Assembly (NCBI GenBank): GCA_973895155.1
Contig: OZ316899.1
Span: 6,141,241 to 6,205,240 of the forward strand
Origin: Marsupella aquatica
Lineage: Eukaryota; Plantae; Marchantiophyta
Length of the DNA: 64,000 nt
Reading direction: 5' to 3'
Part shown: piece by piece, positions 22,390 to 54,467 of the stretch
Numbering within the stretch: the stretch's first letter is position 1
How the letters are laid out: the number at the start of each line of letters is the position of its first letter
The notes under the pieces: generated by a model
Told to the model about the DNA's origin: nothing
Databases searched by the model: none
Seen by the model: only the letters and a program-made list of their open reading frames with translations
Program-made: the position numbers and the translations under genes

Positions 22390-25300
22390 TGTTCTACTCC
22401 ATAGATTACACCAACATCAATGTCTCTTCTATTAGGGATGAAAGCCTTTATGTGTTACATGATGAGGCGGTTAAGTAACTACCTTAACCTCTAAGTATTA
22501 CATTAGGGTCTAATCTAATGTAATGCTCACTTATAGTGTAATCTACATGTCATAACACTCCCCCTTGGTTATTTTATTGGGGTATAAAAGAACCAATCTA
22601 TGTAGAGTCTAAATGTAAGTGTAAGATTAAACCCTAGTTTAGTATGGCCTCCTTAAAACCTTTCTGCTTTCTTCCAAAGGAAAGAGTGCCACTACTTACA
22701 TGTCATAGGGTAATCATGGAGTAAATGCTCTTCAGTAGAGTTTAATGTAAATTATAACTCTAAATGTAATGAAGTGTCATGTGTAAGGGCGTATGTAAAA
22801 TGGTGTAGGTTATTGTAATGTATTACTCGAATGTGAATTGTCTGTCATTTCGCTGATTAGTATCTTTGTCTTGTCTCATTTGCATCGTTTCCGTCTCCTC
22901 TCATCGCTTCTCAACACTGTTCCTCGGTGTGTTCTGATCTATCGTTCCTTTGTCGTGATGGTGTACAGAAGAAACTTGCTAGATTCAATCGTTTTAGCTT
23001 TTGCTTTGGGGGTCAGCATTCAGATGGGCTTCGTAGTTTTCTAGGGTCTGGCTGTCAAAATTTAGTAATTCGTGCTCTGTAGTAAAGTGGAGAGTCGCCG
23101 CATTCCGATGCCCACTGTGTGATCTTTGTGGAGAGATGGTGGAAGTGGTTTCGTAAAAAGATCTGCTCGGTTTTCTTTACTCGGTATCCACTAAACCTGA
23201 ATCTTGTCACCATGTTGTTCGTGCGTGAAGAAAAACTTGGGCGCAATGTGTTTATTTTGTCACCTTTTATGAAGCCCTGAGTGATCTGGTCGACACAAGG
23301 TCGATTATCCTCATAAATAATCATTGGCAAATTCAGGAGTGGACGACCTGTGTTCTTGCTTATGTGGTCGATAAGTTGTCTCAGCCACAGGCATTCGCGA
23401 CTCGCTTCATAAAGTGCTATTAGTTCTGCATGGTTAGAAGATGTAGTCGTAAGGTCTGTTTCAAACTCCTCCAAGATATGGCTGTGCTCCCTTGAAGGAA
23501 CACGTAGCCTGTCTGAGATTTGGCATCGTCGGGATCAGAAAGATATCCGGCATCAGCAAATCCTGTGAGTTCAAGTTTTGCATTGTGTGGAAAAACAGTC
23601 CCAAGTCTGTTGTTCCCAGTAAGTATCGAAAAACTCTTTTGATTCCGTTCCAATGTCTTATTGTTGGTTGGGAGCTGTGCCACGCTAGGAGGTTTACTGA
23701 AAACAAAATGTCGGGGTGCATTTGGTTAGCCAAGTACATGAGCACTCCGATTGCAGATAGGTAAGGTTTCTCCGATCCAAGTGTCTGTTCTGCTTCTGTT
23801 CGCTTCTTGAAAGTGTCTTTATTGGGATCGAGTGATCTCAGTTCCATCGGAGTGCTCACAGGGTGAGAGTTGTCCATGTTGAACTGTTTTAATATCTTCT
23901 TGGTGTAGGTTGCCTAGTGAATCAGTATGCCACCCTGCACATAACCAAACTGAAGTCCAAGACAGTATTTGGGTTCACCAAGATCCCTCATTTGAAATGT
24001 GTTTTTCAAATTTTTTATTGTCTCTTTAGTTATAATAGGAGTACCAAAAATGTTAATGTCGTCTACGTAAATAGCGACAATGATATATTCAGTTCCTTGT
24101 TGTTTTAAAAATAGACAAGAAGCAATATCGTCATTCACAAAGTCGAGTGCTAACATCTCTGCCCGGAACTTTTTGTACCAGGTTTGACCACTCTGCTTAA
24201 GGCCATACATTGAGCGTAAGACTTGCACTGCATATTCTTTTCTCGTTGTTTGTGTAGCAGATTGCGATTTATAAGTTCTTGTATGCCTGTGATTTTCTTG
24301 GAATGCGCTCTGCCTCTTTTGGTTATTTAGAACTGAAGGTTCATTATGTTTTGCATGCTTAGGAAGATACTCTGTAGGAGTTCTTCGTGTAGTCCCAAGT
24401 TGTAAATCATGGGATATGATACCATTTCTCTCCCCCTGAATATGAAAGTTCATCCTTGTGATTAACTCAGGAGGGACTTTCATGTATATAGTGGTGTCGA
24501 GTATGCCATATAGATAGGCTGTCACCACGTGAAGCATCAACTTATGAGCAAGTGCGAAGGAGATCATGTATCTGCAGGTGATGGAATCCATCACTGGTGA
24601 ATATGTAAGGTCAAATCTCTTCCTGGTATCTGAGTATAGCCCTTTGCTACCAGGTGGACCTTATATTGTATGACCTCTCCCTGTGCATTTCTTTTCTTTG
24701 TAAATATAAACTTGTATCCAGTAAGTTTTGTGTGAAGTGGTGCAGGAATGATAGGTCCAAAAACTTCTCTCTGAATGAGTGAGTCTAACTCAGAGTTAAT
24801 AGCTATTTCCCATTGAGGCCAATCGCTTTGCGATTGTGCTTCTTTCACTGATAGTGGGTCCGGTATCTCGTTCGTGATATCTTGTGCGATTGCATAGGCA
24901 AAAATATCATCTATTATTGTATTGTTTCTATGCCATATTCTGCCAATATGCATGTAATTTATTGTAATTTCCTCATTTTGAACAGTCGTTGTAGGTGGTA
25001 GGGCAGTGTGTACCACAGGTATTGATGTATTTACTGTGTTAGCCTTTGATCTTCTTTGTCAAGGTTGATTGTCTCGTGAACCTGGTGGTCGACCTCGCTT
25101 AGCTCTTGGAGCTACTTCTGAAGCTAATCGGCTTGGTGCAACTATCCGGGCAGGTACATTTCCTGCCTCTATATTCGAACGCGTGACAGCTGCTGCATCA
25201 TTAAATACATCAGGTAGCTTCTCAAGCATCTGGTGAAGATGGATAATTTGTCTTACTTCCTCATCTGCTTGTTTGGTCCGTGGATCGTTTTGAAATGGAT

Positions 25301-28237
25301 TTGGAGATTGCCATTGTAGGATCTATGTCTTTGATGTAGTCTCGATGTTTTCTGGATTTGTTAGTCGAGGGAACACATCCTCAAAAAAATTGCAGTCTAT
25401 AAATCTGGCCTTAAATACATCTGTTGTTGTCGGTTCAAGAAAACGTATAATTGATGGTGAGTCATATCCTATATATATCCCTCTTTGTCTTTGGGGTCCC
25501 ATTTTGGTTCGTCTAGGACCCATGATCGGAACTAAACATCCAAATGTACAAAGATGTGAGATGTTTGGCGGAAGTCCAAATGCCAAGTAATGTGGGGTAT
25601 GTGAATTGAATGCAGATGGTCGGTATTTTAGCAATGACGCAGCATGTAGGATCGCATGGCCCCAGGCTGTAATTGGCAGTTGGGTTTGCATTAGCAGGGG
25701 CCTAGCAATTAGCTGTAGTCTTTTGATTAATGACTCTACTATTCCATTCTGGAAATGAACATGGGGAACTGGGTACTCGGTGTCTATGCCGGCTGTCTCA
25801 CATAAATCATCAAAAGTCTTCAAGGTGAATTCCCCTGCATTGTCTACCCTTAATGTTTTAATTGGGTTATCAAGAAACTGTGATTTCAGCTTCAAAATAT
25901 GTGATAGTATTTGAGGAAAAACTAAGTTTCTTGTTGATAGCAAAGAAACCTGAGACCATTTTGATGAGGCATCAATAATGGCAAGGAAAATCCTGAAGGG
26001 GCCTGAAGGTGGGTCTATGGGTCCACATACATCGGCGTGGATTCTTTCAAGGAACCTTGGTATTACATGTGTAGTTTTTGATACTGCAGGTCTGATTATT
26101 AGTTTGCCTTGAGCGCAAGCCAGGCATGGTTGTTTCAAAGTGGAAGGGTGTACTCCCCTAGGTATTCCTACGGTATCCCGGATTATATGATGATACATTG
26201 TAGTACCGGGGTGCCCTAGTTGATTATGCCATGATTATGTTAATGTGGGAACTGATCTTTCAGTGTGGAATGCTTGTATTTTTGTAATATATAGGCCGGG
26301 GGGGGGGGGATCGGTAAGATCTCCCTGTTTGCATTCCCATGTTTGTCTTTTCTAGTATCTGGAGGACTTCCCCTTTCTCGGTTCTGTTTGTATGTATATG
26401 AAGTTGGTTGGCTGTGATGTGTTTGAAACTGACCAAGTTTCGTGTGGCCTTGGGTGCATAAATGGCGGAGCGGATATGAATGACTGTCCCTCCTGAAAAT
26501 CTGACAGTGGCTGGGCCATTTCCTTCCTCGATTTGATTCTGACCTGTTATCGTTGTAATTTCTCTATTTGACTGGGAAATATCTTTGAAGAATTGCCTTG
26601 ACCTAAGGATCGAATGGGAAGTTCCACTATCGACAATGCAGTCAAAGGGATCTGAGTTGTATGTAATCTCAGATTCGTAGTGGTCTGTGTGAGCTTCAGG
26701 CATATCTGTGTCTGTGATATATGCATTTATACTCTCTGGTATTTCCATATAATTCCCTTGTGCCTCTGGTGTTTGCTTGTTTAAGCTTTCTTTATAGAGC
26801 TTAACTAGATGTGTTGTTGCTCTGCATGCATGTCTTTTGGATGTGTCCTTTTGTGCCACAGCGAAAACAGAAGAGTGGAGTAAACTTATCTTGTCTCTGG
26901 TGTTGTGATCCTTGGCCAGAGCTTTGTCCTCAAAAACCATTTCTATTTCTAGGGTCTTGTGCTGCTTCATTAAATTCAGTTCGGCCTCTTCCACGGCCTC
27001 CGTAGCGACCTCGTCCAAATGGTCGGCCTCTGCTCCCCCTGAAGCTCCCACGACCGCGTCCCCTTTGTCTATTTGCTGGCTCATATAGGTGGGTCTCCGG
27101 TTTGGGTGGTAGTGGTGCGGTTCCTGGTGGCCTCATCTTTGCATTCTGCATCAATAACATTTGGTGCTTCTCCGCGAGTAACATATGTGAGATTAGCTGT
27201 GAATATCTGGTAAAGTTCATGTTACAATACTGGGCTGCCAATACAGGTTGGTAACATGAAACATAGATAAAGTCTTTTCGATTTGTTCAGCATCATCTAC
27301 TGGGTTGCCGCAAATTGCCAGTTGTGAAGTGATTCTGAATAATTCACTGTTATAATTTGCAATTGTGGTGTGATCTTGTACTCGCAGATTAATCCAGTCG
27401 TGGCGGGCTGTTGGGAGGGAGATGGTGCACATATGATCAAATCTTAGATGTAGTTCTTCCCATAGGATACGGGGATTATAGTGATTTAAGTACTGAGTCT
27501 TAAGTGGCTCGGCTAGATGATGTCTTATAAGAATCAGGGCTCTAGCTTTTTGTTGGAGGGTGGGGCCTGCATCTGTCAATATTGTATCTTGTAAATCTTT
27601 GGACGCGAGATGTGCTTCAACGTCCAATGACCAAGATAGATAATTAAGTCCATCTATTGACAATGCCTGGAGATGCAATTTCTCCATGGAATTCATTGGA
27701 TGAAATTTTGTTTGTGGATGGTAGGTCGTATCCTTGCAGTTTCCTTCGGGAAGTGTTACAAATAAGAAGTAATTTGTAATTTGATTGCGATTGAAAATGC
27801 ATGTAAGGGTGATTGAATCCCTTGCCTTGTTGTAGTGCTTTATCAGATTGCTATCATCTTTGAGGCTCGGATCTGCAAATTTCTCATGGGTGGGACTGCT
27901 TTGGATTGAATTCGCCTTCCTTTCTTTCCTTCCTTGATTCTGGTGAACCAATTTTATGAATCCCTCGTAACCAGATCGACCGCAAATTGTTGGATTCGAT
28001 CAATCAAAATTAATTGGATTCGCTACCATCTCAAAAAAAAATCTAATGCCCTCCACTAGCTCGTGCTGATAACGTGTTCTACTCCATAGATTACACCAAC
28101 ATCAATGTCTCTTCTATTAGGGATGAAAGCCTTTATGTGTTACATGATGAGGTGGTTAAGTAACTACCTTAACCTCTAAGTATTACATTAGGGTCTAATG
28201 TAATGGTCACTTACAGTGTAATCTACATGTCATAACA
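22390..28237 (-). mobile_element. Full-length Ty1/Copia Bianca-type element 3
   Basis: LTRs at 22390-22557 and 28075-28237 (3 substitutions and one 5-bp indel seen). Minus-strand PBS CGTTATCAGCACGA at 28061-28074, PPT at 22558-22566, flanks ATTTT/ATTTC. Confidence 0.95.
23055..27695 (-). pseudogene. gag-pol of Bianca element 3 (gag, PR, INT, RT, RNase H), frameshifted
   Basis: MEKLHLQALSIDGLNYLSW; CIVDSGTSHSIL; FLERIHADVCGPIDPPSGPF; YGLKQSG...YVDD; GFADAGYLSDP; TSSNHAELIALYEA; IYEDN. Confidence 0.95.
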
Positions 28238-30001
28238 ATTTCCCATCATTGCAACGCACAACAAAGAATTTTTCCAATACAAAAAGAAATTTGCATTGTC
28301 TTGCATAATTAAGCCCTTAATTGGGTCATCAAAATGAATTAATGGGTGGTAATTAACCACTAATCAAACAGAAAAACAAAAGTCTACCCCACTACCCTAT
28401 AAGTCAAAATGTAACATCTTGTAAATTTGAGCTTGGAAACTTTATTTCACAGTTCAATGAATTGAAATAGCAAAGGGGTAAACAAAAATGGCATTAAATG
28501 AACAAGAGCATTTTAATTTTTTTCCTCAATGATGAGAAACAAATGAATGCTAAGACACAATTAGTTGGTTTCCACATATACCATACATCAAGAAGTAAAA
28601 TGTGGACCAATACATGATGGAACTATAAATTGCTTGAATGATATAAATTACATACTTATTAAAAAGAGCAAATGTTTGGAACAAAATTAGAAAGATGTAT
28701 AAGAGGGAACAAACATGAAATGGAAGGATCATTTGTTCACTTGGCTGGCATAAGTTATTACAATGCAAACTCCCTAGACCTCAATTTGAGGGGGAGAAAA
28801 TAATGTATTACCCGGCTCATATTACCCTTGAGACATTCAAATAGAAACCGACAATATTAATTACTATACAAGGTATAGATAGAGGTTCACCTCCTATATC
28901 TAGTGGGGATAGTTGTTAAGCTTACCATGGAGGATATAGGGGCCAACCTCATATAAGATCTATATATATAAGGTATTTAGACATGACTTAAATTTTAGAA
29001 TTCCAAGAATGAGTGAAGAATGCATATACAAATGAAAATTTGAGATTTGAGGGGGAGAGAAGTACACCCTCCTCATATGCATCCATTGGATTATTTGAGC
29101 TCCATTTTACAAATGATATCAAATGAGGAAGTGCCTTTAGCACATGCTATGGATGGCCAATCATGAAAAGTACTTTGTAAAAACAAATAAGATAAGTGGA
29201 GAGAGGAGAAATTCTCCTGGAGATTTGAAAAGCCTTTGATGGAAGTGTGTGAAAGTCCCTAACACCACCATGGCTATGCCACTACTACTTATGAACATGA
29301 CATGTATATGTTGGCCAATGATTTATATCACATGGGAAAAATGATTTCCACATATATGGATCCAAAGGGCAACCGAAGGCAATAGAATACCACCAAAAAT
29401 GATGGAAGACTAACATATGCATGTTGGTTGCAGAAAATGCACATCTGGTTATAAACACCATGAAGGAAGAACATGGGACCAATCAGAAATGAAAACCCAA
29501 GATTCAAGTTTCTTCGCACTTCAAGCCTCAAGCTTCACCTAGAACAAGAGTTCATATGTGACTTACTCCCAATAGGGGACCCAATATATTTAAGACCAAA
29601 TTTTAGATCTATATTTCCACCCCCCTTGAGACATATCCAAAATGACTATAAATGTAACATTGGTGGTGACACTCTTTCCCTTAGAAGAAAGCAAGAGGGT
29701 TTTAATGAGACCACACCAGTGGATACCATGTACTACATAGATATAGCACTTATTGCTAGATGTTAACCCTAGTGTGGTTGCATTATCTATGATAATTAAA
29801 ACAACCAAGGGGGAGTGTTGTAACCCAAAGGTTAGGTCAACATCCAACCCTAGTTAGGCTAGGGATTAAGGTAGTTACTATAACTACCACAGACTACATC
29901 TATACCTAGGGAGGTATTAGTAAACCTATGTGAATGGATGAACCTTGATTGTTGGTGTACTTGACATTTTCTCTTCTAAGAATTATCTCCACCTCTCAAC
30001 A

Positions 30002-30749: not shown

Positions 30750-33217
30750 TGCTATGAATGTGCCACTGGTGCTCGGCTTAATCTGAGAAAATTGGTGATA
30801 GAACCTTTAGCATTGGATGAGGTCCTAGATTGGCTGAGGGACACGGGCTGCCAGATCAGTGCGGAGGGAGAGATACAAAAGTACTTAGGGGCACCTTTTG
30901 GAGCTGGTCTATCTGAAGCCAACCTGCATAACTTCTGCCTAGACTAAATTGGGGCCAGACTCTCATCCTGGTCTACTCGTTTGCTTTCCTTTACTGGTCA
31001 AGTATTGCTGGTTAAACATGTGTTGCAGGCTATTCCAGTATACCATATGATGTTTCTTTGATCACCCGCTTAGCTAACTAAGAAACTGATAGCCTTGAGT
31101 AGAGTTTTCCTTTGGGGTACCAACAAGCAGGGTGGCAAGAGGATCCCACTTGTGGCTTGGGAGAAATTATCCAGACCTAAGGTTGAGGGCAGTTTGGGGC
31201 TGAAAGAGTTCAGAAGCCATTCTGGTGCTCTTTTGAGTAAGTGGTTTACTTGAGCTATGGATCATCCTAAGTTGGAATAGGCTCTGATGTTTGCAGAGAA
31301 CTTGGGGCTGACCAAGTGGAGAAATTACAGAATTGTCCGCATGAACAACTATTCCATGAAGGACAAGCTGCTATTGTGCTCTCCACGGTCCTTTGGCAAG
31401 TTTTTCTACACAGGACAGATCTGGTGTGCCTGGGATCTTGTTTGCATGCACCTGATTTTCTGCCCTGGTACTGCTGTTATTCCTGGCCATTGGGGTATGG
31501 AAGACTTGCTATGCTGCTTATATGGGTTTTATGGTCTACCAGAGGTGGACAGAGAGAAGATTGTGAAAGTGTGCGGAAAATTGGGAATTTGCAAGGTTGG
31601 AGATTTCTGGTGTATTGAAGAGGGAGAATGGATGGACTTGACTGTGAGGATGCAGCAAATTCATGGACTTACAGCACATGTCAAGGCGTTTTGCCTGGAC
31701 TTCTTCTGTGCAATTCACTCCTCTACCTCCTATTGTAGCCACCAGGAGGCACCAACACGGTTGTGGCGTTGGCTGGACATTGATGGCCCTATTAAATCTT
31801 TTGGGCTTGCCAATCACCGGGTCTATGAGATGTTGCGGACTAAGGGATTGGATTCTCTCAAATTGAACAAGATTTGGGGTGAAACACATTCTGAGAGACA
31901 ATGAAATGAGGTTTGGCAGGTTCTGTGGATCTCTTATCTTTCCACTCGGGCCAAAACTTTTATTTGTCAAGTTTTGGCTCAAGGGCTCTTCTCTGGATCC
32001 CAAGCTCTCAAAATTGATAAGTCTGATGGGTCCTGCACCCTTCTCAAGAATAGTTGAAACTATCCCTCATCTTTTCTTTCAGTGCAGGTTTGCACATCGC
32101 TGTTGGAGAATTACTTGGGGATGGATGAACGGGCAGATCATTGGCCCCGATTTGAGCTTACTTGAGTTTAGTAAGGTCTTGCAAGGGGAAAAATCCCCTA
32201 AACATGTTGCGTTTTGTTATGATTTATGAGGTTTTATGGAGCATCTGGCTGGCTAGGAATGGACAGACTTTTGACTTGGCAAAGAAATGAGTTTTTATCA
32301 GGTTTTGATCTACTCTGCTACGCTTGACCTTTTGGTTGTTGGTACGGCGGTTTCAAAATCCAGTAGGAAACACATGCGGCTTGTCTATGCAACTGCCCTA
32401 CTAGAAGGAGAACGGAGTAGGATATTGAGAAGTGGAATCAGAGGCATAGTATCATTCTAAGAAGAAACCAGGTTGCTGATTGTATAGTGGGAACTAGTTG
32501 AGTCCCAATGAGTAGGACATCTTTTGGCTCCTTGAAAAATTGTGCTACTTTGTCTCAGTTACATCATATAGTGCCAATGTTAGGAATAGGTGAGAACTGG
32601 ATCCTCAGTCATGTGATGCTGTGAAGTTTTTGATACTTTGGAGGTGCAATCAAATTGATCTTCTAGATGCTTTAATTCAGCGCTTATGATGCACGATACC
32701 AGAAGGTGCTTGGTAGGGACTAGGTTTTTTGACTGAGGTACTAAGTTTTTGGCTTGGCTGTTGTGCCACATGTTTTCTATTTTGCCCTCTTAGGGGCTTT
32801 CACAACTACAATTTTTAACGTTGCGTGCCCTATGAATGTCTTCAGCGTAGACGTTCAATTGGATCACGTCAAACAAGACGTCATTCCATATAGCTGAAGA
32901 CGTTAGGCCAACGTCGTAGAATATGGCGCAACAATCGGAGTTATTTTTACGTCGTGTGATACGACGTAAGATTTACGTCGTCTCATCTGGGTAATTATAC
33001 GTTGGCTAGAAAGAGGTAAAATAAATTGCGTCATCCAGAGCGTCATAATGTACAGTTTTTTGGACGACGTGTAAAAGTACGTAGGAATTTGAGAGGTTAA
33101 ATCCATTCTGGAGCTCTCATCGACGTTTGAGAGTTACTCTGCCACATGATACGTGCAAGACATCATTTTGGTCGACGTAAATGACAGAAATTCCTTGCTG
33201 ACTCGGGTTTTCTACCC

Positions 33218-33963
33218 ATGGCTTTTGGTTCATAGCTGCTAAGACCTTCCAAGACTTGCATTCAAGTTTTTGAGTGAGCTCTTGTCTTGAGTAGGGAGAA
33301 ATTTTTGTGGGGGATAGAAAGTGCTAAGCTACGGTGCGCAAGCTATTCAAGGATGTGCATTGTTGCTTCCTTCCTCTCGGTGAAGAGGACAAGACTGTGC
33401 GTGGGTTCTTTTGTCGTGGAGGTGTTATTGAGAAGTTGTGTACCTCAGAGACAGACTACTTGCTGGCCTATACCTGGAAAGATGTTGTTGAGCACTTCAG
33501 TGACTACCCTGGATTGATTGAGCACTTTGCGGAGACAGTGCATTTCATTTCTATCCGTTGGGTTGAGTGCTCCATTCTGGCTAACAAGGAGTTGGATCCA
33601 GGAGACTTCTTGTTGCAGCCGGGTGATCATGAGATCCTTGATGATTTGCCCAAGCCTAATGATGGTGAGGCATATCCACCTACCTTCTGTAAATGTGAGT
33701 TATTGCCTACTGAGCTTGGGATTTATTGTACGATTACAAGGAAAGCTGTGCAGCTGAGGTTGAGGCTGAAAGGCTGAAGGTTGGGGAAGCGGTTGTGCGG
33801 AAGAAATGGAACCAGAGCCAGAGGCGTGATTCATACAAAGCAAGGAAGGCCGATGAGGAGTACTACTGGTCTGGTGAAGGGGCCCCTTAAGCAACAATAC
33901 TTCAAATCGCAGCTGGTTGTGGGGTTTAGGTTCCATGATTCGCATAGGTTAGCATTGCTTTAG
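33218..33963 (+). pseudogene. Unknown cargo ORF in the CACTA element
   Basis: 147-aa frame 33334-33777 is continued in frame by 33781-33963. It is convergent with the transposase. Confidence 0.45.
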
Positions 33964-34460
33964 TGGAAAGACAATGTGTTGTGAAATGTATAACTTGTGT
34001 GTTCATATCACCTTAATAAAGACACCCATGATTGTATTATTTTGATTGTGCCGGTGAATGTGCCCTTTCAGTGTGTGCAATGTGAGTAACGTCGCCCCTC
34101 ACACGTTACGTTGTCCTCCACGTTGTCCCAAAATAGTTTACATATCATAATAAGACGTTCCACAATGTACGTCCTGTAGGGCTACGTTTATTTATGTCGC
34201 AATTTAGTATCACGTCGTGTAGGGCTACGTAAGAATGACGTTAAGTTAGTGGTTTACGTCATTTTTGGTGGGGTTTTAGGGGTTTTAGGGGTTTTGCGAC
34301 GACGTACGGGTTTTCTACGTCGTTTTGGGTGTTACAAATGGGACGTTTAATGTTATAAATGACGTAAATGAGGACTGTCCAACCAGACAGTATATATGTA
34401 AAGGATGGCTACAGCCAATATACATGCATCCAAAGCATCATGACAGTGGTAATGGTCATA

Positions 34461-37400
34461 TCAATCAGCATCGTCTATAATTGCTGATTGCATCAAACCC
34501 TTCCTCCACCGTGGGAAGATGGGAATGACAATGGACCACCCTCTCATAGTCTGCATGGGCACCATAATACACTGATCCACTTGGCTAGGAAAAACTATGG
34601 TATCACTAACCTCAGTCCCGCTTGGTGCTACACGAGTCGTGTCCACCCGGTAAAATCCAAACTCATCTTTCACCATGGTGGCTCTCACAAGAGGTGACAT
34701 GATGGACTTGTGCCACCGCACCTCTAACACAGTAGTGGTAAATGACCAAAAGTCAACATCTAAAATGTCCAATACAGTGCCGCAATAAGGAACCTCAACA
34801 TCACCTCGGTCTGTCAACATGAACACTCGTGAGTTACATGTTGTCTTTTTCATATGGTCTGTCCTCCAAGTCCGAAAGTGGTGCCCCGACTCATACATGT
34901 GTGTATGAGTTGTTGCCCACATCGATGGCCCCCTAATGATGTTCTGAACATCAATCGGGATGGATGTGGGCCCATGCTCTGCCAGGCCCCTCTCCATGTG
35001 CTCCAATGCCCATACGCGGAATGATGCAATTGTGCGTACATGTCCTGCAATAACCGGCTGTCGCTCCCTCCATGCCCTGGCATTTGTATACACAAATATT
35101 GTTAGAAATTTGCAGTATCCTATGGACAATAAAGTACTCCCCAACTACAAGTCTAACTTCACAATCTAAATGCCTCATACCTGTACAACTCCCTCCAAGC
35201 TGACATGTCAGGGCGGTTTTCCAACACATAATTGTGGATTTGTCGTCGAAAAATGTTGTCATGTAGTGACCGCTTCTTCGACGCACCCATCAAGCGCAAC
35301 CCACCATGTCCTCATCCTGTGCCTCTTCCCAATTTGTGGGAGCTGTAGGGTCCAAACTCCCTATCATCCCCCCTGAATAGAAGAGGCACTCAGACATATG
35401 TACCCTGTTGCCATGCTTCCCTCTGGTCGAGCTGGTTGACGCACCATGGACTTGAGCACTTTCATGAAGCGCTCAACCCAATCCATCCACCGCGCATGAA
35501 CTGGACCAGCAATAGCTACCTCATCCATGAGGTGACATAGCAAATGCAATTGCATGTCAAAGAGACAAGGAGGGAACACCTTCTCCATATTGCACATCAC
35601 ACGTGCTGACCTCTCCCTCATCAAAGGAATCTCACACTCCTTTATCTCCTTAGCGCATACCCACCTATATTCCACCTCATACAATCCAATTGATTTAATA
35701 TCACAATCACACCAAGCGGTTGCCAAAATTACCAACTTAATTAATTATAATACTGGTAATGAAAAAAATTAAGCCCAAAATAACAAGTCTCTAGTTTTAA
35801 ACTTAGGGTTTAACCCTAAACTTCTTTAAAAACATACCTGAAAATAGAGCACATGGCGTAAATGGTGAGTCGAAGTAGGCGTCTCTCTCGCGAGTCATCA
35901 CAACAATGCAAGACAGCAGGCAGCACATGTTGAATCAACTTGTGATAATCATGAGACTTTAGCCCTATTGGGGGCATGTGGTCATTTCTGCTAGTGCACC
36001 CACGAAAGCCGGCTCCATAGTGGCTAGGGAATTTCATCTCACAAATCATCCCATTAATTTGCTTTAATGTCTCCTTTGGCAATACCCAAGGAGCAGGTGG
36101 TTTCCCCCCAGTACTTGTCATCCAGCAAGACTTCACAACTCCTACATTCTCAGCATCCTCTCGGACTTGACGAGTATCATTCCATCCATAAATGTGCTTC
36201 AACAAATTCTTAGCAACATTCACTTTGATGTGCATGGGGTCCAACAACCACCGGACCTGGAGGTCTGGAGCATGAAAAAACAATAATGTTGGAGTTCACT
36301 AATAAATTTCTCAATAGCAATAGTTTTCAGTGAAGACTCCAATTTGCAATTAGAAAAATTAACCATTTGCTTTGTCTCACTTACCCTCCAATAAGGCAAG
36401 TCCCACAAAGCTGAGCGGCGATTACTCCACAATCTTTGGGTTTGAGTAACTTTGCCTCCACCATCTCTGCCATTTGGATTTGCCCTTCAGCTGAAGGGCC
36501 ATTGGGACATGGTCTTAACTCACTTTCTGCCCAATGAGTTGTGTTTCGCCGCAAGTGATCATCCATTGCCAAGCGGACCCTACTTCCCTCATATGTGGTT
36601 TTGTGCAATAGTGATGAGTACCTCCCATGCAACTCAGGACCACATGAAGGGCAAGGTGAATAACCTGCCACCTTCAAACCAGATATTGTTCCCATACCTG
36701 CAAATGATATTTTGGGTCCATAGAATATGTCATTATCTCTATTACATTGTACAATATAATGCAATTAGAAAAATGCTCTAGGTTGTCTTGTGAATTACCT
36801 GGACCATCGGTGGTGCAATGGGTGATCATCACTCTCATCTGGAATATCCTGCCATTGCTAGGAGCCCGAGTGACATCTGTGGTAGGTGCCCCAACCTCCC
36901 ACAGGTTTTGTAGCTCTTCATAAGCTAGTGCCAAGCAGACATCTGGATTCTTGCAGGCCTCAGGACCAGGTATGATAGCAAGGAGGAGGACATGGCCCTT
37001 TTTCATTGCCAACCATGGAGGGATGTTCTGATTAATCAAGAGAACCGGCCAAATGGACTTAGGCTTCCGCCGTTGCTTGTACGGGTTTACACCGTCTATT
37101 GCCAACCCCAATCGGACATTTCTTGGCTCCTGGGAAAACTGAGGCCAAGTCATATCAATGTGTTTCCATGCTGGACTATCTTGGTGGTACCTCATAATCC
37201 CTGGTGGGGATTTGTTCTCCGCATGCCAAGTCTGTAGTGTGGATAAGCGTTTCCGTCGATATAGGTGTTGCAGCCGGGGTGTGATAGGGAAATACCTCAC
37301 TACCTGTAATAACAATAGTGAAACCATTCAAATTGACGATATTAGAACCCTAACGTCATTTACGAAAACATAATCTTATTTTAACCACGTCTTCTATGAC

Positions 37401-40170
37401 GTAAACAAAGAAGAGACATTACTTTACGTCACAGAAGAGACGTAAAATGGGTTTACATTGTCTGAGAACACGTATTCAATTCACATTGACGTTACAATGT
37501 ATGTTACGTCGTGTAATGAGTCGTAGATATGACGTTAATACAACGTTAATAAATAAATCTATGAATTTGAAGACGTATGATGTGAATGTAGTTTGTTGAG
37601 TTGGATGTTAAGTTTGCACCTGAGTATGTGGACGCTAATCACATGAGTTTGCATAAGTAATTTACCTTCTCTGGAATTTTGTCCCCAATGGTGTCTGGTC
37701 GATATCGTGGAAGGCCACACCGTTCCTTTGGGCAATGAGTGTGCTCAACATACTCCTTTCTATACAAGATGCAACCAGCGGGGCACATATGGATAGTCTC
37801 CAAAGCCAATCCAATGGAGACAAGTAACTTCTGAGCCTCCCTCACACATCCAGGAAGAGTGTTTGGTTGGGGCAAGAATTTCTTGTGGAACAACTGCAAT
37901 AGTGCATCTGTATGGACATCCGAACCATTGAAAACTCCTTGCAAATTTAACATCAAGAGAGTGGCAACCAACCTGCATTTGCAAAACCACAATTAGTTCA
38001 TCAAAATGCAACCATAGTACTACCTGCAATTACACTCTCACAATTAGGGAAGTCATAGGCTTCTCTACCTCGAGGTTGGAGAACCCTCACATAGTGGAGT
38101 TCTGGCTTCTGATTTGAGCTGGTCCCAATCCTCCTGGTCTACTTCCGTAGTAGGGTGATCATCGTCAGGTGCATGTGGTCCAAAGTGAATGTCAACCAGG
38201 TGGGCAAAAGCTTCCTCTTCAAGAATAGGTGCAGGCCCCTCATCCTCTACATCATCATCAAACTCGACATCATATGCATCATGGTACTCATCATCATCAT
38301 CGTCCACATCATCATCATCATCCAGATCATCATCCACATCATGGACATCATCATCATTGTCGTCACTGAAATGTAATGTGGCTCGAGCGTGGAAGGCACG
38401 GGCTGATGTAGTCATCATGGATGGGTGTGGTGTAGGAGTAATATTGGCACCATCCTACATATGTAAGTAAGAAATTTCCAATGCAAACTCATCATTAGAC
38501 AAAGAGTTCCATGAAGGGTGCAATGAAGCTCAAATAATGATATGTGCAAGGAATGTCATGTATTGAATAGGTGATGTACATATAAAGTTGTGATCAATGC
38601 CAATCATAATCTACAAAAATCTCATCTCCTGCTCTAATGGTGCGGGTGGCATGCGTCAAGACATAATGTGTGCATGCCATGGGCAAACGTGGGTGACACG
38701 CATCATGGTACTCGTGCCACTCAGCGTTTGGCCTAAACCCTAAACGCCGACACCCAACAGTGCTATTGATGTAGCCCGCCAAGTTTCCCGTGCGAGGTGG
38801 ATAACCATCCATCTGAGAATACCTAGGGTCCATCTTCAGTGACATGCCATATCGACCAAAGGTCGGACACTGTCAAGACAAGATTCGTCATCTCTAGGCC
38901 GAATACTTCGGCCCATAGAATGAGAACAACTGAGGTAAATCGTCAGGGGCACACCCATGAGGGACCACTATATCCACAAGTGCAAAAACGCCAAGGCCAA
39001 CGTCAGGTCCCAATGTGGATGGGAGGAGGGCCCACGGCCGACCCCAGACTATGATAGGTTCCCTGACTGGAAGGTCGTCGGGGAGTCCAAACTGGGCAGG
39101 GAAGGAGTCCTTTATGATATCCAAGGCTCTCCCTCGCAACTGTCTCGTGACTCTCAAAGAAGGTGCATCAAGAAAAGGACAACGTGGCGGCACTATCCTA
39201 GGTAGACGAGACTCCATCGACCTCAGTCTAGTGGTCACCACTACTCCCCTCTCAATAGGGTGCACTTGCACCACTCTCCCATCAAAAACACGGTCTATAG
39301 CCCTCAATGTGGCAGACAATGCTGATGGGGGTACTAGAGGGGTGATCGCACGCCTCGCAATCTCTCTCATGCTGTCCACGGCCGAAGGCATTACAATAGG
39401 AATCTGTCCACATGTGACCAACAGGACAACTTCAGAATTTGTGTCTGCAAGCATGAACAATTGCAGCCTAGACAACTTCTAGTTAGGTAAAAAATGAAAG
39501 CAACTAAATAATTGAAATGTTTAAACCTTATATTTACCTCTTGTGTGGGCGGTATATAACGACCGTGGATCCCTAAATGGCTAAGGACAGTGGTCCTCTC
39601 GTGAGACACAACTCCCTTGCACCGCCTACATGGGCAAGGCATCTTACGGATAGGTCCAATCCCTTGAATGACAGCCATAGCGTCTCCAAATCCCTCCTCA
39701 GCCGTGGATGGGTCGTGATACTGGTGCGAGGGACTCAAGGATCTAGTATCTCTCCTTCTGTCCCGCCGATGTCTGCGTCGGTGATGCCTGGACTGATGGC
39801 GCCTAGATGGTGAGTCATCCCTCCTCCTCTCCCGTGACTCATCGCTGAGGGATCAGCCCTCCTCCTGCCCCGGGAGTGATCCCTCCTCTCCTGGGAGTCA
39901 TGGCTCATCATCCCTAGGGACACATCCCTCCTCCCTGGCGACTCATCCCTCCTCCTCCTCCTCCGTCGTGACCCATCCCTCCTCCTATCCATGGATCCAT
40001 GGCTCCTCCTCTCCTGGGACTCATCACTAGTCCCCCCCCATGACTGATCTCTCCTCCTCCCCAACGACTCATCCCTCTCCCTACTATGATGACCTTGTCT
40101 GCATCGGTGACAAGTACCTCCATCACAATGGTCATAGTATGATGAGGAAGACCCATACATTGCCATATGG
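34461..40170 (-). pseudogene. CACTA Tnp2/TnpD transposase, multi-exon
   Basis: Transposase-associated CPCRRC...HLGIHG; IHMCPAGCILY; RYFPITPRL...EPRNVRLGLAIDGVNPY...WPV (Transposase_21-like); LDPMH; LKSHDYH; FPPCLFDM..HL...GPV..RWM..ER (DUF4218-like); YCG.V.DI (DUF4216-like). GT-AG introns. Confidence 0.92.
38594..39391 (-). pseudogene. SET-domain protein (putative lysine methyltransferase) nested in a transposase intron
   Basis: One reading frame with three in-frame stops at 38866-38896: PSTLGPDVGLGVFA...FYGPKY...YGMSL...MDG...GNLAGYINS...PNAEW...ATRTIRAGDEIFVDY, i.e. the SET motifs in order. The start may be ATG 39391 or a spliced upstream exon. Confidence 0.85.
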
Positions 40171-40559
40171 CCATGCAACAACATACATGCCAAATACCAA
40201 TTAGTACCATTCAAATAATGGCAATAAACCCCACACATTTTCCTACCCTACGTAAACCCCCAATGTAACATCGTTTATGTAAACCCTGGACATCGTAACC
40301 CCCTATTTTATGACGTATTGTGAAGTTTACGTCGTCCCCCATAATGTTCTATTTAGGGTTTGTGAAAAGAACGTCATTAAAAATGACATTAAATTGGGAG
40401 AACAGGGGTTCTTTGTGGTTTTGCGCGTAGCTCGGCGTTTTCCAAAGGAAAACATTGGGGTAATAGTCGAATGTGAGACACATTCGACGTCCCGGACCCC
40501 AACTCCCCTCCTCTCTCTTTCTCTCATTCAATTCTGACCTCTATGTTTGACAGTTGCCC

Positions 40560-42806
40560 TTCCAATGTCAAGACCAGCCTATCTTCCTTTCAGTGTGAAC
40601 TTTGATGTAGACAAGGTGGCCATGGACGATTCAGAGGAGTTGGAGAAGGTGCGTTGAGCTTTGCTTTCCACCCACCCATTGATCAACGCTTTCAATCAAA
40701 GTTGGAGATACTTGGGAGGAGTGGGAAGCAAAGAGTCCTAGTTTTTGGAGTACCTGGGCAATATCGAGGTCAATGCTCTTGCCATGGATGAGGATGAACA
40801 GATTCCCGCTGCAGAGTGCTTGGGGGAGCTCGGTGAGGCTTCAGTGAATCCTCTACCTTCGTTCCCTTTGCTACCAGATGATGGTTGGGATGATCTAGCT
40901 TTCTTAGGAATGGCGCTTGATTCTCAGGTTCATTCTGGGACTCCTATCAAAATCCAGGTCAGGATCCCACATGACAAATATGAGCCAGAGGATGGGGGGC
41001 GGGATTATCGTAGGAAGAGAAAGCATAGATCCCCTTCTAGGAGCAAAAGCAGTAGCATTGACAGGAGAAGACGAAAAGAGAAGGGAAAGGAGTGCAGACG
41101 TCTAGATGTAGACCCAAAGGCGGACAGGGGAAGGAGGCAATTACCTCCACAGCCACATTTGTCTCGTCCTTAGGCACCAGATTCTGCCCAACGAGCTGCA
41201 GCAAAACCCAGCAATAGAGAGGAGCTCCCGACCATAACTTTGGCAGCTTTTGATGCAAAACCGGATGTCCTTGATGAGAAGGCACTCACCAATCGAGTGC
41301 AGACCTGCTATGCGAAACATTGCCCGGGTTAGACAACCTGGAAGGATTTGTCACATAACACTAAGAAATTCCAGACACTCCTCAATGATGTGCAGACTGG
41401 GTTCCGCAATGGGAGAGAAATTGACTTCCGTCACATGAGGCAAAAGATTGTAAACCACTTGGCGGATAGAAGGTTTAGGTGGAAAAACAAGGTTCAAAAA
41501 TCAAAATCTTTGCAAACAGGGGAGTACCACAAACCTGAAGGGATGACTGAGGCTGATTTCAATCTGATCGTCAGCAAGTTGGAGGCAGACCCAGACACGG
41601 CAGTAGGAAAGCGAGTGCGCATGGGGGACAAAGCAACAGCAGCTCGAAAGCAGACTGGCCGGCTTGCAGTGACCAATTTCTAGGGGCAGGGAGGATGGCA
41701 AGGCTTCCTTGCAACCTATGTAAGTGCCCGTCCTAATTTCCTTGCTATTTGTGCGTACCGGAGCCTTGCGGTGAACTCCTGCTACAAACGTCGAGTTTGG
41801 AAATTTTATGTCACAAAATCCACTAGTAACGTCGTCGCTCACATCGTAGCACCCTTCTTACGTACACCCTAACGACTTCTGTTAGTGAAACATCTTCTCA
41901 TCGACGTTACAACTATGCAGTTTGTCTTTACGTCGCATAAAACGATGTTATTGAATGTACGTCCCAATCAGCGGTGTACATTACAATGTCCCTTACGACG
42001 TTACTAGTTTTTGCTGCAGAAGCGCAAGTATGGACGAGAGGCTGAGCCTAGCGAGGAGGAACGGCTGTACTCCAAGCGGTATGGCCCTACGGCATTGTGG
42101 GCCAAGTTGGATTCCACCCCAGAAGAGTTCCCTGTAAGTAGGAATCCAACAACATTCCTTGGCAGTGCTAGTTGTATAAGCTCTATTGTGTCAGCATGTA
42201 TTGATACATAGAATATGTCATGTGCAGGTGGATTGGACCCCTCCGGAGGGGTTAGTGGCACGCCCCATCATAGAGGATGAGCAGGTGGACATTGTACCTG
42301 ATGAGGAGGGTACCCAGGAGGAGGCACCTGTAGCTTGCGGACAGCAGGGTAGTGCAGGCACACAGGCTTGTGACAGAGAGAGAGGTGAGGGAGGGAGAGA
42401 TAGAGGGAGGGAGAGAGAGAGAGAGGGAGGGAGAGAGAGAGGTGAGGGAGGGACAGATAGAGGGAGGGAGAGAGAGAGAGGTGAGGGAGGGAGAGATAGA
42501 GGGAGGGAGAGAAGGGAGAGAGGGAAGGAGAGAGGGAGAGATAGAGGGAGGGAGAGAGAGAGGGACAAGGGAAGGAGAGAGAGAGGGAGGACGAGGAGCC
42601 ATGTCCATAGGGACACCACCAGGAGATCCCGCGACACTAGAGGCAAGGGTGCGGAACAGACAGATCCTTTGTCCTCCAGTAGTAGTAGCTCAGATGAGGA
42701 TGAGCAGAGGATTGAGTTGCGCTATCGAGGCGGACAGTCAAGAGGTGCGCAAGAGAGTTCCATCCGTAGGTCTGGACGGAACAGGAGCCACTCTCAGCGA
42801 CATTAG
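40560..42806 (+). pseudogene. CACTA second ORF (TnpA/Transposase_24-like), multi-exon, divergent from the transposase
   Basis: ...KIVNHLADRRFRWKNKV...KPEGMTEADFNLIV...ARKQ...GQGGW, with introns near 41719-42018 and 42134-42227 and an ER-rich C-terminus. Confidence 0.65.
42372..42595. repeat. GA-rich low-complexity tandem repeat
   Basis: Units like GAGAGAGGTGAGGGAGGGAGAGATAGAGGGAGG, encoding an ERGEGGRDRGRE-type tract. Confidence 0.9.
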
Positions 42807-43562
42807 GGTTTAGGGTTTAGGGTTTGCACGATTTCCTCCTGAATTTTGTAAATTTCCCAATTCTATTTTGATCTCACCCATATGTAGTGGTGCCACATTC
42901 CAGGATTGAACTGTGTACAATGGGCATGTATTGATCTTGAACACTTGATTGTGTATTTTGTATGTATTCCCTACCCCCAAAAATGCACAACCCGTCCACA
43001 TAACCATGGAGCCCTAAACAACATCATACGTCGGAATTAACATTCCCACAAAAGTCAGATAATTTTAATATACCTCGTCTATGGGAAGAATCCAACGTCT
43101 TATTTGCCGTTGTCAAGTTAATTAGGTCATTCCATATGACCAACATAACGTCATGGACAACGACACACACTCACATGAACATCGTTTATAAGGCCTCGTG
43201 TAAACACGTTATTTACAACGTAATTCACTCTGACGTCGTATTAAACAACGTAAACAACTGTAATTCTCTGAGTAGACTCTTCCCCTTGGAACGTCGCAAT
43301 AAACTACGTTAAGAATGTTACGTCACTTAAAATGTGGTAATAAACGTCGTTGTGGACGACTTAAATGAGGTTGTCTGGGTCTGGGCTCTTTACGTGCCCA
43401 GTTTCACGTCGCTTTAATCGACTTTGCTTTGGGGCAAGTTCACGTCGTGTTTAGCGTAAACTCAGATTACGTTAAACCCTCAAGAATTGTAGTTGTGTTT
43501 GTTGCCTTTGGGCCTACTTGGTTCCCCCATCCATGGGTTCATGCGGAATAAAAAAAATTAAA

Positions 43563-46133: not shown

Positions 46134-46254
46134 TGTTGTAACCGAAGGATAAGTCTACCTTAGACCATGGTAACCATAGGTAGTTACACTTGTCTAACTA
46201 CCTCCATGTATATATTACCCACATGAATGAGAAGGAGATCAGTAGTATTCAACA
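46134..46254 (+). repeat. 3' LTR of Bianca element 1
   Basis: Preceded by PPT AAGGGGGAG and followed by TSD ACATA. Confidence 0.95.
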
Positions 46255-51179: not shown

Positions 51180-54100
51180 TTCGCTTTCGGGCCTCCTCAT
51201 AAGCATTCACAGGATGTGACAACCTCTGCAATCTTCCTTTCATAGGCTGCATTCACCAACTGCACAAATGGGCAGAACATTAGTTTGATTTCATATATAG
51301 TCCATACATGTAGTCCATCTATGGACTTCACACACCTAAAACCTATTCACTGCTTAGGCCTACCCTTTCTTGCAGATCCCTTTGCATCTCTGCCTCGTTT
51401 GGGACCAGTACTTGGTCCTGGATTTGCTCTAGTCCTACAGGCTTTAGCCAATTCAATGTGTAATTTGGCATTGTTTTCCATTGTAGCATGGAAATCAACA
51501 TCTGTGTAATCACCTAACACCCTTGTGGACCTGGATTCTTTGTGGAGGATTGTTCTCCATGCTATCCCCTTCTCATTGGGGTGGAAGAAAACCTGCTCCA
51601 CTTGCTTTGGGAAAACGTAATCCATTTTCTTGGACACACCCAGTTCTCTATGGAAATTCACGTGCCAAAGACCAGACTCAGAATACCTCATACTGGCAGA
51701 GGATTTAGGAGTCCATGATGGATCTGCCCATTTCCCTTTGAAAAGAATCACCTCTTTCCTCAAGCTGTAGTAATTCAGTACCAAGATATCTGTCAAGGCC
51801 CCTACATACTGTACAAATTCTTCTCTAGTTGTGCCAGACCTGTCCACTCACTTCTCAGTGAATGTCGAAGCCATCCCAGAATCAAAAGTGCTGAATGCAC
51901 CAGAATCACAATCACTCAAACACCCCAAGGATGGAATAGTCCTCCAGTGATGCCCATAGGCTCTGCATGCCCTATACAGTCGTGCTTTCAAACTAGGTGG
52001 TGTGGAGTATGCAGATAGTAATGACCGCTCAGACTGTCTCAAAATTATGGGTATTGACTAATGTTTGAAACCATTCCCTGAAAGGTGGCAGTTCTTGGCA
52101 GTCAAGGAGAAATTCCACTGGTTTTCTTTGATTGGCAGGCTTCCTCATCCATTCCTTCCGGAAATCCACTCTTTGTTTGGTAACGGTCTCATTGGTAGCA
52201 TCATATGTCCTACATGGCAACAACAACACTTAAGACATTAGTGCACGATCCACCATGAATATACAAACACAATGGGCCGGGGCAACATAATTATGATCCA
52301 TATGGTACAGGGTTTACATACCTGTACCATGGAGCCACTGTCTCTTCATTCTCCAATATATAATGATGCATGGCCATCATTTCAAACCAATTCAAAGTTA
52401 TCTCCTTTGCAGCCCCTTCCAAGACAATGCTTGCAACGCCAGCATCCTCCTCCAACTCCCAGGTTTGTTTTCCCTCTCCCTTAGCATCAATCATGTATTC
52501 AGAAAGGAATCCCAAAGACTCATCTAATACATAGCCTTCAGCCATAGAAGCCTCTGGACATGCCTTGTTTCGTACATAACCCTTCAATACCTTCAGGTTC
52601 CTCTCTATTGGGTACATCCATCTGCCTGTAACTGGGCCACACAAGTCTAATTCCTCCACTAGGTGCATCATTAAATGGGTCATGACATCAAAGAAGCTTG
52701 GTGGAAAATGGATTTCTAAAATGCAGAGAGTGAATGCAACATCCATCATCAAATTCTCATACATTGAAGGGTCCCACACCTTCGTATAGATCTGGCGATA
52801 GATATTGCTAACCCCAGCTATGGCCAAGAAAACTCCTTCATCAAGTAATCCCATTGCTGCCAGAGGGAGAATCTGATGTATGAGTTGGTGGAAATCATGT
52901 GATTTGAACCCAGAGAGTTTCTTGGATTTTGTAACACACTTTGCCAAAGAACTTGAAAAACCAGTGGGCCCTTTCAAGGTCAATAACACCTCCAAGAACC
53001 TTGTTCTTTCCTTCTTGCTTAGGCAATATGGGGCTGGGGGCATCAACAATTTGTCATCGTTACGCTTGGGAGCTGGATTGTGTACAAGCCATAGGTGTTG
53101 TCGCACCTGTAAGAGCTTCAGGTCTTCTTGCACAGAAGGAGTGTCCTTGGTCCCAATGATAGTGTGCACAATGTTGTGTGCAAGATTCATCTCACAGTGC
53201 ATGGGATCTAGACAACGGTTAATGAGTGGTTTCTGCAGTGGACACACAATTCAGAAATTAGGGCATTGAATACAACAATTACAAAATCTGGGCTACAGGA
53301 AGTAAACACATTTCAAAGTCATATGAAGAGATTGCAGAAATTCATTGTAGTAGTATGGAGTCTTACGTTTCAATAGGGCAACTTGTACAGACCAGTAGCC
53401 CTCTTCACTCCATGCACCTTTATGGGGCAACTCTCATCCTCAACCTTGGTTCCTCCCTTCTTCAAATATTCTGTTGTCTCGTCTCCCCACTTCTTTCTAT
53501 CAGAGCTTGACATTCTACACGGTGCAAGTCGGCTCTCAATTGCACCATCAAAGTATTGTGCACTATCTGGTCTACGAAAAAGATGCCTTGCTGTTAACCT
53601 TCAACGGTGGCCACTGTACTCTAATTTCTGCAAGTGCTTAGAACCACGTGCCACACATTTTGGCCCACAGATGACACATCCTTCGTATCCAGCGTGTTGT
53701 TGTCCAGATATTAAACCATATGCAGGGTAATCATTGATTGTCCACAATAGCACAGCCCTTAGGTTGAAGTGTTGAGACAATCCTGGGCGTGACAATTTGT
53801 CAAAGCAGGGCACTCCTTTCGTCCTCAACAGCTCTAGCTCCTCATAGAATGGGCCCAATATTATGTCCAGTTGTTCCTCTATTACTGAATCAGGTCCTGG
53901 AATCAGCATAGCTAGCATGACAAAGAACTTCTTGGTGGTAAGCCAAGGAGGTAAATTGTAATTCAACATCAAGATTGGCCAGGTAGACCAAAGCTGTGGA
54001 ATTATTCCCAAAGGGATTCACCCCATCAAGTGCCAACCCAAATCGCAGATTCCTTGGTTCAGCTACAAATTTCTTATCAATACTTGTATCCACATGCTTC

Positions 54101-54467
54101 CAAGCCTTGGAATTTGCTGCGTGCCAAACCATGTTGTCTGTGCTTCTATTCTCATGATGCCAAGTCATGAGTTTAGATGTACCAGCAATGGCATACAATC
54201 TCTTCAACCTGGGAATTATAGGGAAATACCGCACCACCTTCCTTGCCTGTAATGAATTCCCCACTCTCTTCATCTTGGGCTGCTGACACACTGAACAGTT
54301 TTCTAACTTGGCAGACTCACCCCTAAAGAGCATGCAACCTTTCTCACAGACAAGGATTCTCTCCTAATCCAAGCCAAGCTTTCTCAATAGCTGCTTTGCA
54401 GCATATAAGTTATTGGGCAGATTATGCTCTGCAGGCATACCATGCTCCCCCATCAAAGCCAACAATG
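51180..54467 (-). pseudogene. CACTA Tnp2 transposase (second element, 5'-truncated)
   Basis: RYFPIIPRLKRLY...EPRNLRFGLALDGVNPF; WTINDYPAYG; LDPMHCEMN; FKSHDFH; FPPSFFDVMTHL...RWMYPIER; YVFPKQVEQVFF. Confidence 0.93.

Follow-up and report, generated by a model that had tools for sequence, protein, structure and literature searches.

A 64,000-nucleotide (nt) stretch of the genome of the liverwort Marsupella aquatica (hereafter the window: assembly GCA_973895155.1, contig OZ316899.1, positions 6,141,241–6,205,240, forward strand) was found to contain a complete CACTA transposon of 10,697 bp (32801–43497, minus strand), bounded by an inverted repeat of which both ends could be read. Its transposase gene, which lies wholly inside the element, includes an exon coding for a SET domain, situated between the first exon, which carries a zinc (Zn) motif, and the remaining exons. 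We put at roughly 0.7 the probability that the element represents a liverwort CACTA family in which exon 1 is shared by two alternative products, a Zn-SET protein and the transposase, the former being a methyltransferase that acts on the transposon itself. To judge from the copies compared below, the SET exon is a conserved and selected feature of the whole transposon family, and not a private capture.

The transposase was recognised by two Pfam domains, Transposase_21 (E = 3.5e-37) and DUF4218 (E = 2e-25), both on the minus strand, on which all positions of the gene are read hereafter. Exon 1 is an open frame (39538–39852) with a basic Ser-rich stretch and a first ATG at 39678; it includes the Zn motif CPCRRCKG...H...HGRY (39538–39636) and its last residues, ...PPTQE, end at 39538 against a phase-0 GT donor (39537–39536). 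A phase-0 AG acceptor is present at 38456–38455, and the next exon runs from 38454 with GAT GGT GCC. This acidic (Asp/Glu-rich) exon, which starts DGANITPTPHPS (38068–38454), has tblastn matches in loci L001, L003, L005 and L009 and is found again in L008, downstream of the SET stop. The remaining exons (34464–37977) contain Transposase_21 at 36429–37306 and DUF4218 at 35385–35669. A preliminary description of the window had proposed a 1083-nt phase-0 intron between a donor at 39537 and an acceptor at 38455, most of it occupied by a same-strand SET frame; on a minus-strand reading every one of these coordinates holds (long intron of the transposase isoform, 38455–39537).

The SET exon (38594–39403) consists of 269 codons and its own TGA stop (38596–38594), and matches the family hidden Markov model (HMM) at E = 7e-94. 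On the transposase strand its motifs follow one another as GLGVFA, FYGPKYS, GNLAGYINS, PNAEW and IRAGDEIFVDY, so that the frame with ordered motifs of the preliminary description is real. The C-terminal piece alone reached E = 4.5e-5 with Pfam SET (PF00856; 24.2 bits, for a gathering score of 22.4), and a six-frame scan of the window with the family HMM returned two SET pieces only (E = 3e-37 and 8e-36) and nothing else below E = 1, that is, no second SET in the window. The exon is broken by exactly three in-frame stops (within 38873–38896), as had been claimed, and in computation it was read through these as X. The first (TAG, 38896–38894) falls in a column that is variable in relatives, and other copies, from the same or a related genome in public-run contigs, have a coding-strand C at 38896, giving CAG (Gln); the second (TGA, 38890–38888) aligns with an invariant Trp of the family and the third (TGA, 38875–38873) with an invariant Arg. 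For these reasons all three are deduced to be single transitions, of C-to-T or G-to-A type, as the preliminary description had proposed. Differences among the family copies in public-run contigs are likewise mostly transitions. The transposase stretches of the window are spread over 2–3 frames, against single open reading frames (ORFs) in relatives, which indicates several frameshifts, and the low-complexity start of exon 1 seems frameshifted too. Since three stops in SET are combined with several frameshifts in the transposase, the window copy is a dead, fossil one which adds nothing functional.

Between the exon 1 donor and the SET frame lies a short intron of 134 nt (39404–39537), which would end with a phase-0 CAG at 39406–39404, in an acceptor column (Q) that is conserved. 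Two other acceptors were considered and rejected: the AG within the TAG at 39481–39479 is in frame, but would leave a 59-nt intron and is not conserved, and a TGCAG around 39447 is out of frame; the CAG at 39406–39404, conserved in all loci, was preferred. Downstream, a non-coding spacer (38455–38593) separates the SET stop from the next AG acceptor and would contain the 3' end of a SET transcript. Equivalent spacers of about 130–190 nt exist in L001, L005 and L008.

Relatives of the SET exon were collected by several searches. With its N-terminal piece as query one protein was found, and that protein as query gave 15 homologues; a profile search of 1.84 billion representatives returned 150 clusters at E ≤ 1e-3, 38 of them at E ≤ 1e-30, and a metagenome scan with SET alignment A2 added only one short locus (L020). 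Intact SET ORFs in relatives are 258–300 amino acids (aa) long and 36–91% identical. Where contigs were long enough for the order of the two genes to be assessed, an intact SET ORF was located just upstream of Transposase_21/DUF4218 on the same strand: this was the case in L001, L002, L003, L009–L012 (eight runs of one study) and L018 and L019 (the Riccia sorocarpa genome). By tblastn, the gene order is the same at every locus: SET-N, SET-C, acidic exon, exon 3, Tnp21, DUF4218. The named members are R. sorocarpa (Marchantiopsida) and Calypogeia fissa (Jungermanniopsida), with Ginkgo biloba as a distant relative; the SET-CACTA family is thus present in both major liverwort classes. In two coded organisms, hundreds of public-run contigs with 85–99% likeness extend over the SET part as well as the transposase part, so that the family must be multi-copy there. 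These contigs come from four public runs, no RNA run with this stretch having been found, and show copy diversity rather than splicing. Pfam analysis of 14 family members identified SET only, and no N6-adenine DNA methylase domain; SET scores were 25.9 bits for P0002, 24.1 for P0063 and 34.2 for P0111.

Some contigs of the coded organism B join 38249 to 39552 and so leave out 1302 nt, with the SET exon and part of the exon on either side. The ends of this joint are non-canonical (CA..CG); it may be a deletion derivative without SET.

The sequence of the SET part has been maintained by purifying selection while diverging together with the transposase. With the Nei-Gojobori method, the ratio of nonsynonymous to synonymous substitution rates (dN/dS) is 0.37–0.47 for the unsaturated pairs among L001, L003, L006 and L007 (Fisher p = 2e-7 to 3e-4), and SET identity correlates with that of three transposase segments over 21 locus pairs (Spearman 0.67), the pairs in both tests being non-independent and the p-values therefore indicative only. 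The SET core is the more constrained part (dN/dS of 0.30–0.45 versus 0.39–0.48 for the N-terminal part). A maximum-likelihood tree built from 55 SET cores has copies linked to a transposase on both sides of its midpoint root; together with the co-divergence, this agrees with a single ancient acquisition, after which SET was inherited along with the element.

Fragments of host genes are known cargo of CACTA elements, and the three stops of the window copy, as well as the existence of stand-alone relatives in Calypogeia and Ginkgo, could suggest a passive capture of Pack-CACTA style, in which a host SET fragment decays neutrally in this copy or in a small subfamily. This we consider extremely improbable: intact ORFs occupy a constant place and orientation in many diverged elements (at least nine contexts), dN/dS is significantly below 1, SET and transposase co-diverge, and what is carried is a complete domain whose splice phases are conserved, not a fragment. 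The proposal of the preliminary description, that a transposon family carries its own SET gene, is accordingly borne out by its presence, intactness and dN/dS in other copies. The same data answer the objections which had been foreseen there: SET is a family-wide feature rather than one restricted to this copy with its own target-site duplication (TSD) or poly-A, neutral decay from a near-identical host gene is at odds with a dN/dS of 0.3–0.47, and a fold match exists, with Z scores of 12–13 (see below).

Exon sharing was assessed in the eight loci in which both parts are visible, namely the window, L001, L002, L004, L005, L006, L007 and L009, the Zn motif of exon 1 and its donor recurring in all seven loci other than the window. 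In each of the eight, a GT donor follows the last complete codon of the Zn exon, and 121–191 nt further on a CAG acceptor opens the SET frame in phase 0. The lengths of this short intron span all three modulo-3 classes and in-frame stops occur within most of the introns; therefore only splicing can join the Zn and SET frames. The first Met of the SET frame has no conserved position. In L008 (P0030; L008:433–1704), Zn and SET form one uninterrupted ORF of 423 aa, the short intron being lost or absent, and this ORF is followed by a spacer of about 130 nt, an acceptor and the acidic transposase exon. Three Riccia gene models, P0028, P0041 and P0054, also consist of Zn + SET. Each SET exon examined stops a few residues past the catalytic Tyr. 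It thus appears that SET is better described as an alternative exon which shares exon 1 with the transposase than as a gene nested in an intron: the location in an intron, given in the preliminary description, stands, this being the first intron, and it is the word 'nested' that the CAG acceptor at 39404 and the separate stop lead us to replace. Since the phase-0 sites are conserved in eight loci, one lineage has an uninterrupted Zn + SET ORF and Riccia has Zn + SET models, co-transcription of SET with the transposase is implied.

Two other arrangements of the same parts have to be weighed. The SET ORF could be an independent gene nested in the intron, with a promoter and a start codon of its own and no use of exon 1. 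In the clade P0001–P0004 an ATG stands straight after the acceptor, which is also compatible with independent translation, and gene callers give a stand-alone ORF of 258–300 aa; however, there is no ATG at that position in the window, L004, L005 or L009, the frame is open from the CAG acceptor and the donor is at a codon boundary in 8/8 loci despite the varying length and sequence of the intron, and Zn + SET is a single ORF in L008. An independent gene is, in our view, rather improbable. The second arrangement is a SET-transposase fusion similar to SETMAR, made as one polypeptide. Riccia models P0067 (SET + Transposase_21, 773 aa) and P0073 (Zn + half SET + Transposase_21) would correspond to it, but both are predictions in which the SET domain is cut, and every SET exon examined has its own stop, after which a non-coding spacer of 130–190 nt precedes the next acceptor; we give a fusion hardly any credence. 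The alternative exon with a shared exon 1 is therefore the arrangement that we retain.

As the window copy is broken by stops, structure was predicted for P0017, its nearest intact relative (63% identical to the window SET core). The AlphaFold 2 (AF2) model, based on a 39-sequence alignment, has a mean predicted local distance difference test (pLDDT) score of 87.7, and above 90 in the SET core. A Foldseek search with the model gave 261 PDB matches at E ≤ 1e-3, all of them SET methyltransferases among the matches listed, headed by LegAS4, MLL1, NSD, SET7/9 and SETD8 (E about 1e-6). VIA-align superposed 118–135 residues with Z scores of 12–13 and a root-mean-square deviation of 2.3–3.1 Å, with no subfamily prominent. 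At the level of sequence profiles the best solved relatives are Legionella LegAS4/RomA (E = 4e-5 across the whole core). Residues G143, G145 and Y271 are invariant in alignment A2; in alignment A3 (39 sequences) G129 is invariant and G127 and Y257 are nearly so. The window copy has GLGVFA for the GxG motif and GDEIFVDY for the catalytic-Tyr motif. As modelled, the SET part of the family is a bona fide SET fold with a GxG cofactor motif and a catalytic Tyr.

The ends of the element bear on its classification and on the proposed target of the Zn-SET protein. Its terminal inverted repeats (TIRs) are 16 nt long and follow the consensus CACAACTACAATT(T/C)TT, with arms complementary at 15/16 positions; the left TIR, CACAACTACAATTTTT, is at 32801–32816 on the plus strand and the right one at 43482–43497 on the minus strand. 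The 13-mer CACAACTACAATT occurs at these two sites only within the window. A TSD of 3 bp, TTT, is found on both sides (32798–32800 and 43498–43500), a triplet of T being weak evidence when taken alone. The TIR opens with CAC (CACAAC) and includes ACTACAA, and a literal CACTA or CACTG start is not present. A subterminal cluster of CGACGTAA, an ACGT-core motif, extends over 32947–33180, and a similar cluster is located at the opposite end; there are seven exact copies of CGACGTAA in the window (0.35 expected), all within the element, and ACGT density per 250 nt is 5–11 at the element ends versus a window mean of 0.56. Neither a TnpA-like ORF nor any other conserved second gene was found in the element flanks. 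A GA-rich microsatellite occupies 42375–42590, in the 5' region of the element, and L008 starts with a similar GA-rich stretch. Given a tnp2-type transposase, a 3-bp duplication and the subterminal ACGT-core clusters, the window element is assigned to the CACTA/En-Spm superfamily, even with a TIR that does not open with CACTA.

The model that we favour is one transcription unit with two products that have exon 1 in common. In the first isoform, exon 1 would be joined over the intron of 121–191 nt to the SET exon of about 260 aa, resulting in a Zn-SET protein of about 330–420 aa; its transcript would either end inside the 'intron' or keep the remaining exons as a 3' untranslated region. In the second, the SET exon would be skipped (1083 nt here) and exon 1 joined to the acidic and the Transposase_21/DUF4218 exons to give the transposase. 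The Zn-SET isoform would be an active lysine methyltransferase which, through the N-terminal module that it has in common with the transposase, would act on the element's own ends, with their CGACGTAA clusters, or on the transposition complex. Its role would be that of an epigenetic accessory factor, akin to TnpA of canonical En/Spm.

Several points weigh against this reading. Most family members have scores at or just under the Pfam SET gathering score, several being at 19–22 bits, and the selection and correlation tests have the limit stated above. DNA binding by the Zn motif is assumed, Transpos_assoc matching exon 1 at E = 1.5e-4, under the Pfam cut-off. The splicing, 3' end and expression of the SET exon are deduced from sequence, the Riccia gene models are predictions only, and the ATG of the P0001–P0004 clade has been mentioned. 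As to the active site, the NH(S/C)xxPN motif is not found as such: it is replaced by (Y)INS, an insertion of 7–10 residues and then PN, the Asn being kept and the His replaced by Ser. A post-SET Cys cluster is absent in the family. For these reasons SET catalysis is considered no more than plausible, and the chromatin writer of the preliminary description putative.

The same features (NS for NH, the loop insertion before PN, the lack of a post-SET region) would suit a SET domain that is no chromatin writer, either because it is a binding module or pseudoenzyme or because its target is a non-histone protein, for example the transposase or a silencing factor of the host. Two of the structural neighbours, SET7/9 and SETD8, have non-histone substrates. 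Moreover, these neighbours span enzymes for H3K4, H3K27, H3K36, H4K20 and H3K14 with tied Z values, so that no substrate specificity is readable from them. Against a loss of catalysis, the 39 diverse members show little or no variation in GxG, the conserved Asn residues and the catalytic Tyr, constraint is strongest in the SET core, and the closest solved relative, LegAS4/RomA, is an active histone methyltransferase despite its YINFS (PMC10653858); as this motif is comparable to that of the family, NS in place of NH weakens the case for catalysis without excluding it. We judge a non-catalytic or non-histone function to be unlikely, though less so than the independent gene, and retain an active Zn-SET methyltransferase as the preferred reading.

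A more specific scenario can be offered only tentatively, as we lean somewhat against it. A land-plant CACTA clade would have swapped or supplemented a TnpA-type factor with a spliced Zn-SET protein, which would methylate histones or other proteins at the subterminal repeats of its own element and so evade or adjust host silencing, and at least one liverwort, C. fissa, would have domesticated a stand-alone copy. The Calypogeia gene in question, P0063 (GCA_965154635.1, L017:10001–11512), is a stand-alone, single-exon relative of the transposon SET, coding for 503 aa. It is located between the genes for mitochondrial mL59 and an FtsH protease, with no transposase within 10 kb by tblastn; its Cys/His-rich N-terminus differs from that of the family, it stands on a long branch within the family SET tree, and it has a paralogue, P0194, on another contig. 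From these features P0063 may be a domesticated copy. The Ginkgo protein P0111 (Gb_21150), also with a Cys/His-rich N-terminus, is 24% identical to P0017 (E = 3e-11); therefore relatives of this SET type exist beyond liverworts.

The window contains other repetitive sequences. A second CACTA transposase remnant (52300–54470, minus strand; DUF4218, E = 3e-35) shows 30–50% identity with the transposases that accompany SET; upstream of it neither a SET nor a Zn exon was found, and since it may be 5'-truncated this is no evidence of a SET-less lineage. Nested long terminal repeat (LTR) retrotransposons occupy 21155–30001, with two pairs of direct repeats (21155–21337/29816–30001, 96–98% identity; 22390–22564/28075–28244, 90–98%) and Copia-type ORFs within them on the minus strand (23.9–28.0 kb; gag, Pol_BBD, SH3_retrovirus and RVT_2). 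A large interrupted inverted repeat (13726–15871 and 19066–20565) has arms of 84–489 nt that are 83–90% complementary. A 121-nt direct repeat of 97% identity, at 16699–16819 and 46134–46254, that is, 29 kb apart, encloses both the nested retrotransposons and the CACTA element. Near the window end, an ORF on the plus strand (62051–62602) with an RVT_1 reverse transcriptase domain (E = 7e-19) indicates another retroelement. A further ORF, of 613 aa on the minus strand at 171–2012, has no Pfam match at E ≤ 0.001.

DNA transposons that carry SET genes are already known, and it is the land-plant CACTA case and the exon-sharing layout that appear new; in agreement with the preliminary description, which knew of no SET-carrying plant CACTA family, our literature search brought up no account of a SET gene in any CACTA element of a land plant. 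The novel aspects, as far as the sequences allow us to say, would be the liverwort host, the plant tnp2-type transposase lineage and a lone SET exon that shares the first exon of the transposase. SET genes are on record in HarbingerS and in Phytophthora MuDR families (Kojima & Jurka 2014, Repbase Reports, as cited in PMC12730594), and capture of SET by Helitrons is cited in 10.1101/2025.02.11.637652. As far as these citations describe them, they resemble the window family in being DNA transposons with a SET lysine-methyltransferase accessory gene; they differ in superfamily (PIF/Harbinger, Mutator and Helitron), in hosts (oomycetes and others) and in having SET as a separate gene, the comparison being one of descriptions only. 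A nearer case is PAG2 of the red-algal Plavaka elements, of the EnSpm/CACTA superfamily, in which an N6-adenine DNA methylase (PF01555) is combined with SET; here too an EnSpm-superfamily element has a SET-containing accessory protein which has been conserved over long evolutionary times, but PAG2 is a separate fusion gene in a three-gene cassette of 17–19-kb elements (10.1101/2025.02.11.637652), whereas the window family has Pfam SET only, an exon 1 in common with the transposase, and a transposase of the plant tnp2 type.

In its presumed gene organisation the family is closest to an analogy with En/Spm. Maize En/Spm and Arabidopsis EN/SPM3/7 make TnpA and TnpD from one gene by alternative splicing (PMC13547354), and TnpA has been shown to act against silencing, to bind clusters of subterminal motifs and to derive from transposase domains by splicing-based partition (10.64898/2026.08.24.746577). 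The window family has in common with them Transposase_21, a 3-bp TSD and subterminal clusters, and would by analogy also make either a transposase or a smaller accessory protein from one unit. It differs in that the alternative product has a SET domain instead of the TnpA DNA-binding domain, that the alternative exon lies in the first intron so that only the Zn-motif exon is shared, that the TIR starts with CACAAC and not CACTA, and that a TnpA-like ORF was not found in its flanks. VANC of the Arabidopsis VANDAL Mutator-like elements (MULEs) and the fungal TET/JBP transposons are similar in that the encoded factors are thought or shown to alter the epigenetic state of their own elements; VANC is a sequence-specific hypomethylation factor and TET/JBP a 5-methylcytosine (5mC) dioxygenase (PMC12730594), whereas a lysine methyltransferase is predicted here.

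LegAS4 and RomA (PDB 5czy, 8sr6/8swi), which are active H3K14 methyltransferases (PMC10653858; 10.64898/2026.05.29.728679), resemble the SET domain of the family in their GNLxxYINxS, in the replaced His of the NH motif and in lacking a post-SET Cys cluster. Both are effectors secreted by bacteria, contain ankyrin repeats and show about 20% identity, with no sign of a common origin beyond the SET superfamily. In SETMAR, the primate SET-mariner fusion, SET and transposase are likewise in one locus and linked by splicing, but there a host SET gene captured a transposase to produce a fusion protein, whereas the SET exon of the window family would be the element's own and has its own stop.

Few transposon factors that act on the host epigenetic machinery are known, namely VANC, TnpA, fungal TET/JBP and the red-algal PAG cassettes. 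If our reading is true, an enzyme exon kept for a long time in a land-plant CACTA transposase gene, and spliced to the Zn module of the transposase, would be a compact new case among them, and P0063 a possible example of the domestication of a transposon-borne SET enzyme. The family would also offer a testable route to the question of which histone or protein lysine a transposon would methylate. That question is relevant in bryophytes because transposons there, as indicated in 10.1101/2022.10.24.513474, are marked by H3K27me3 in addition to H3K9 and DNA methylation.

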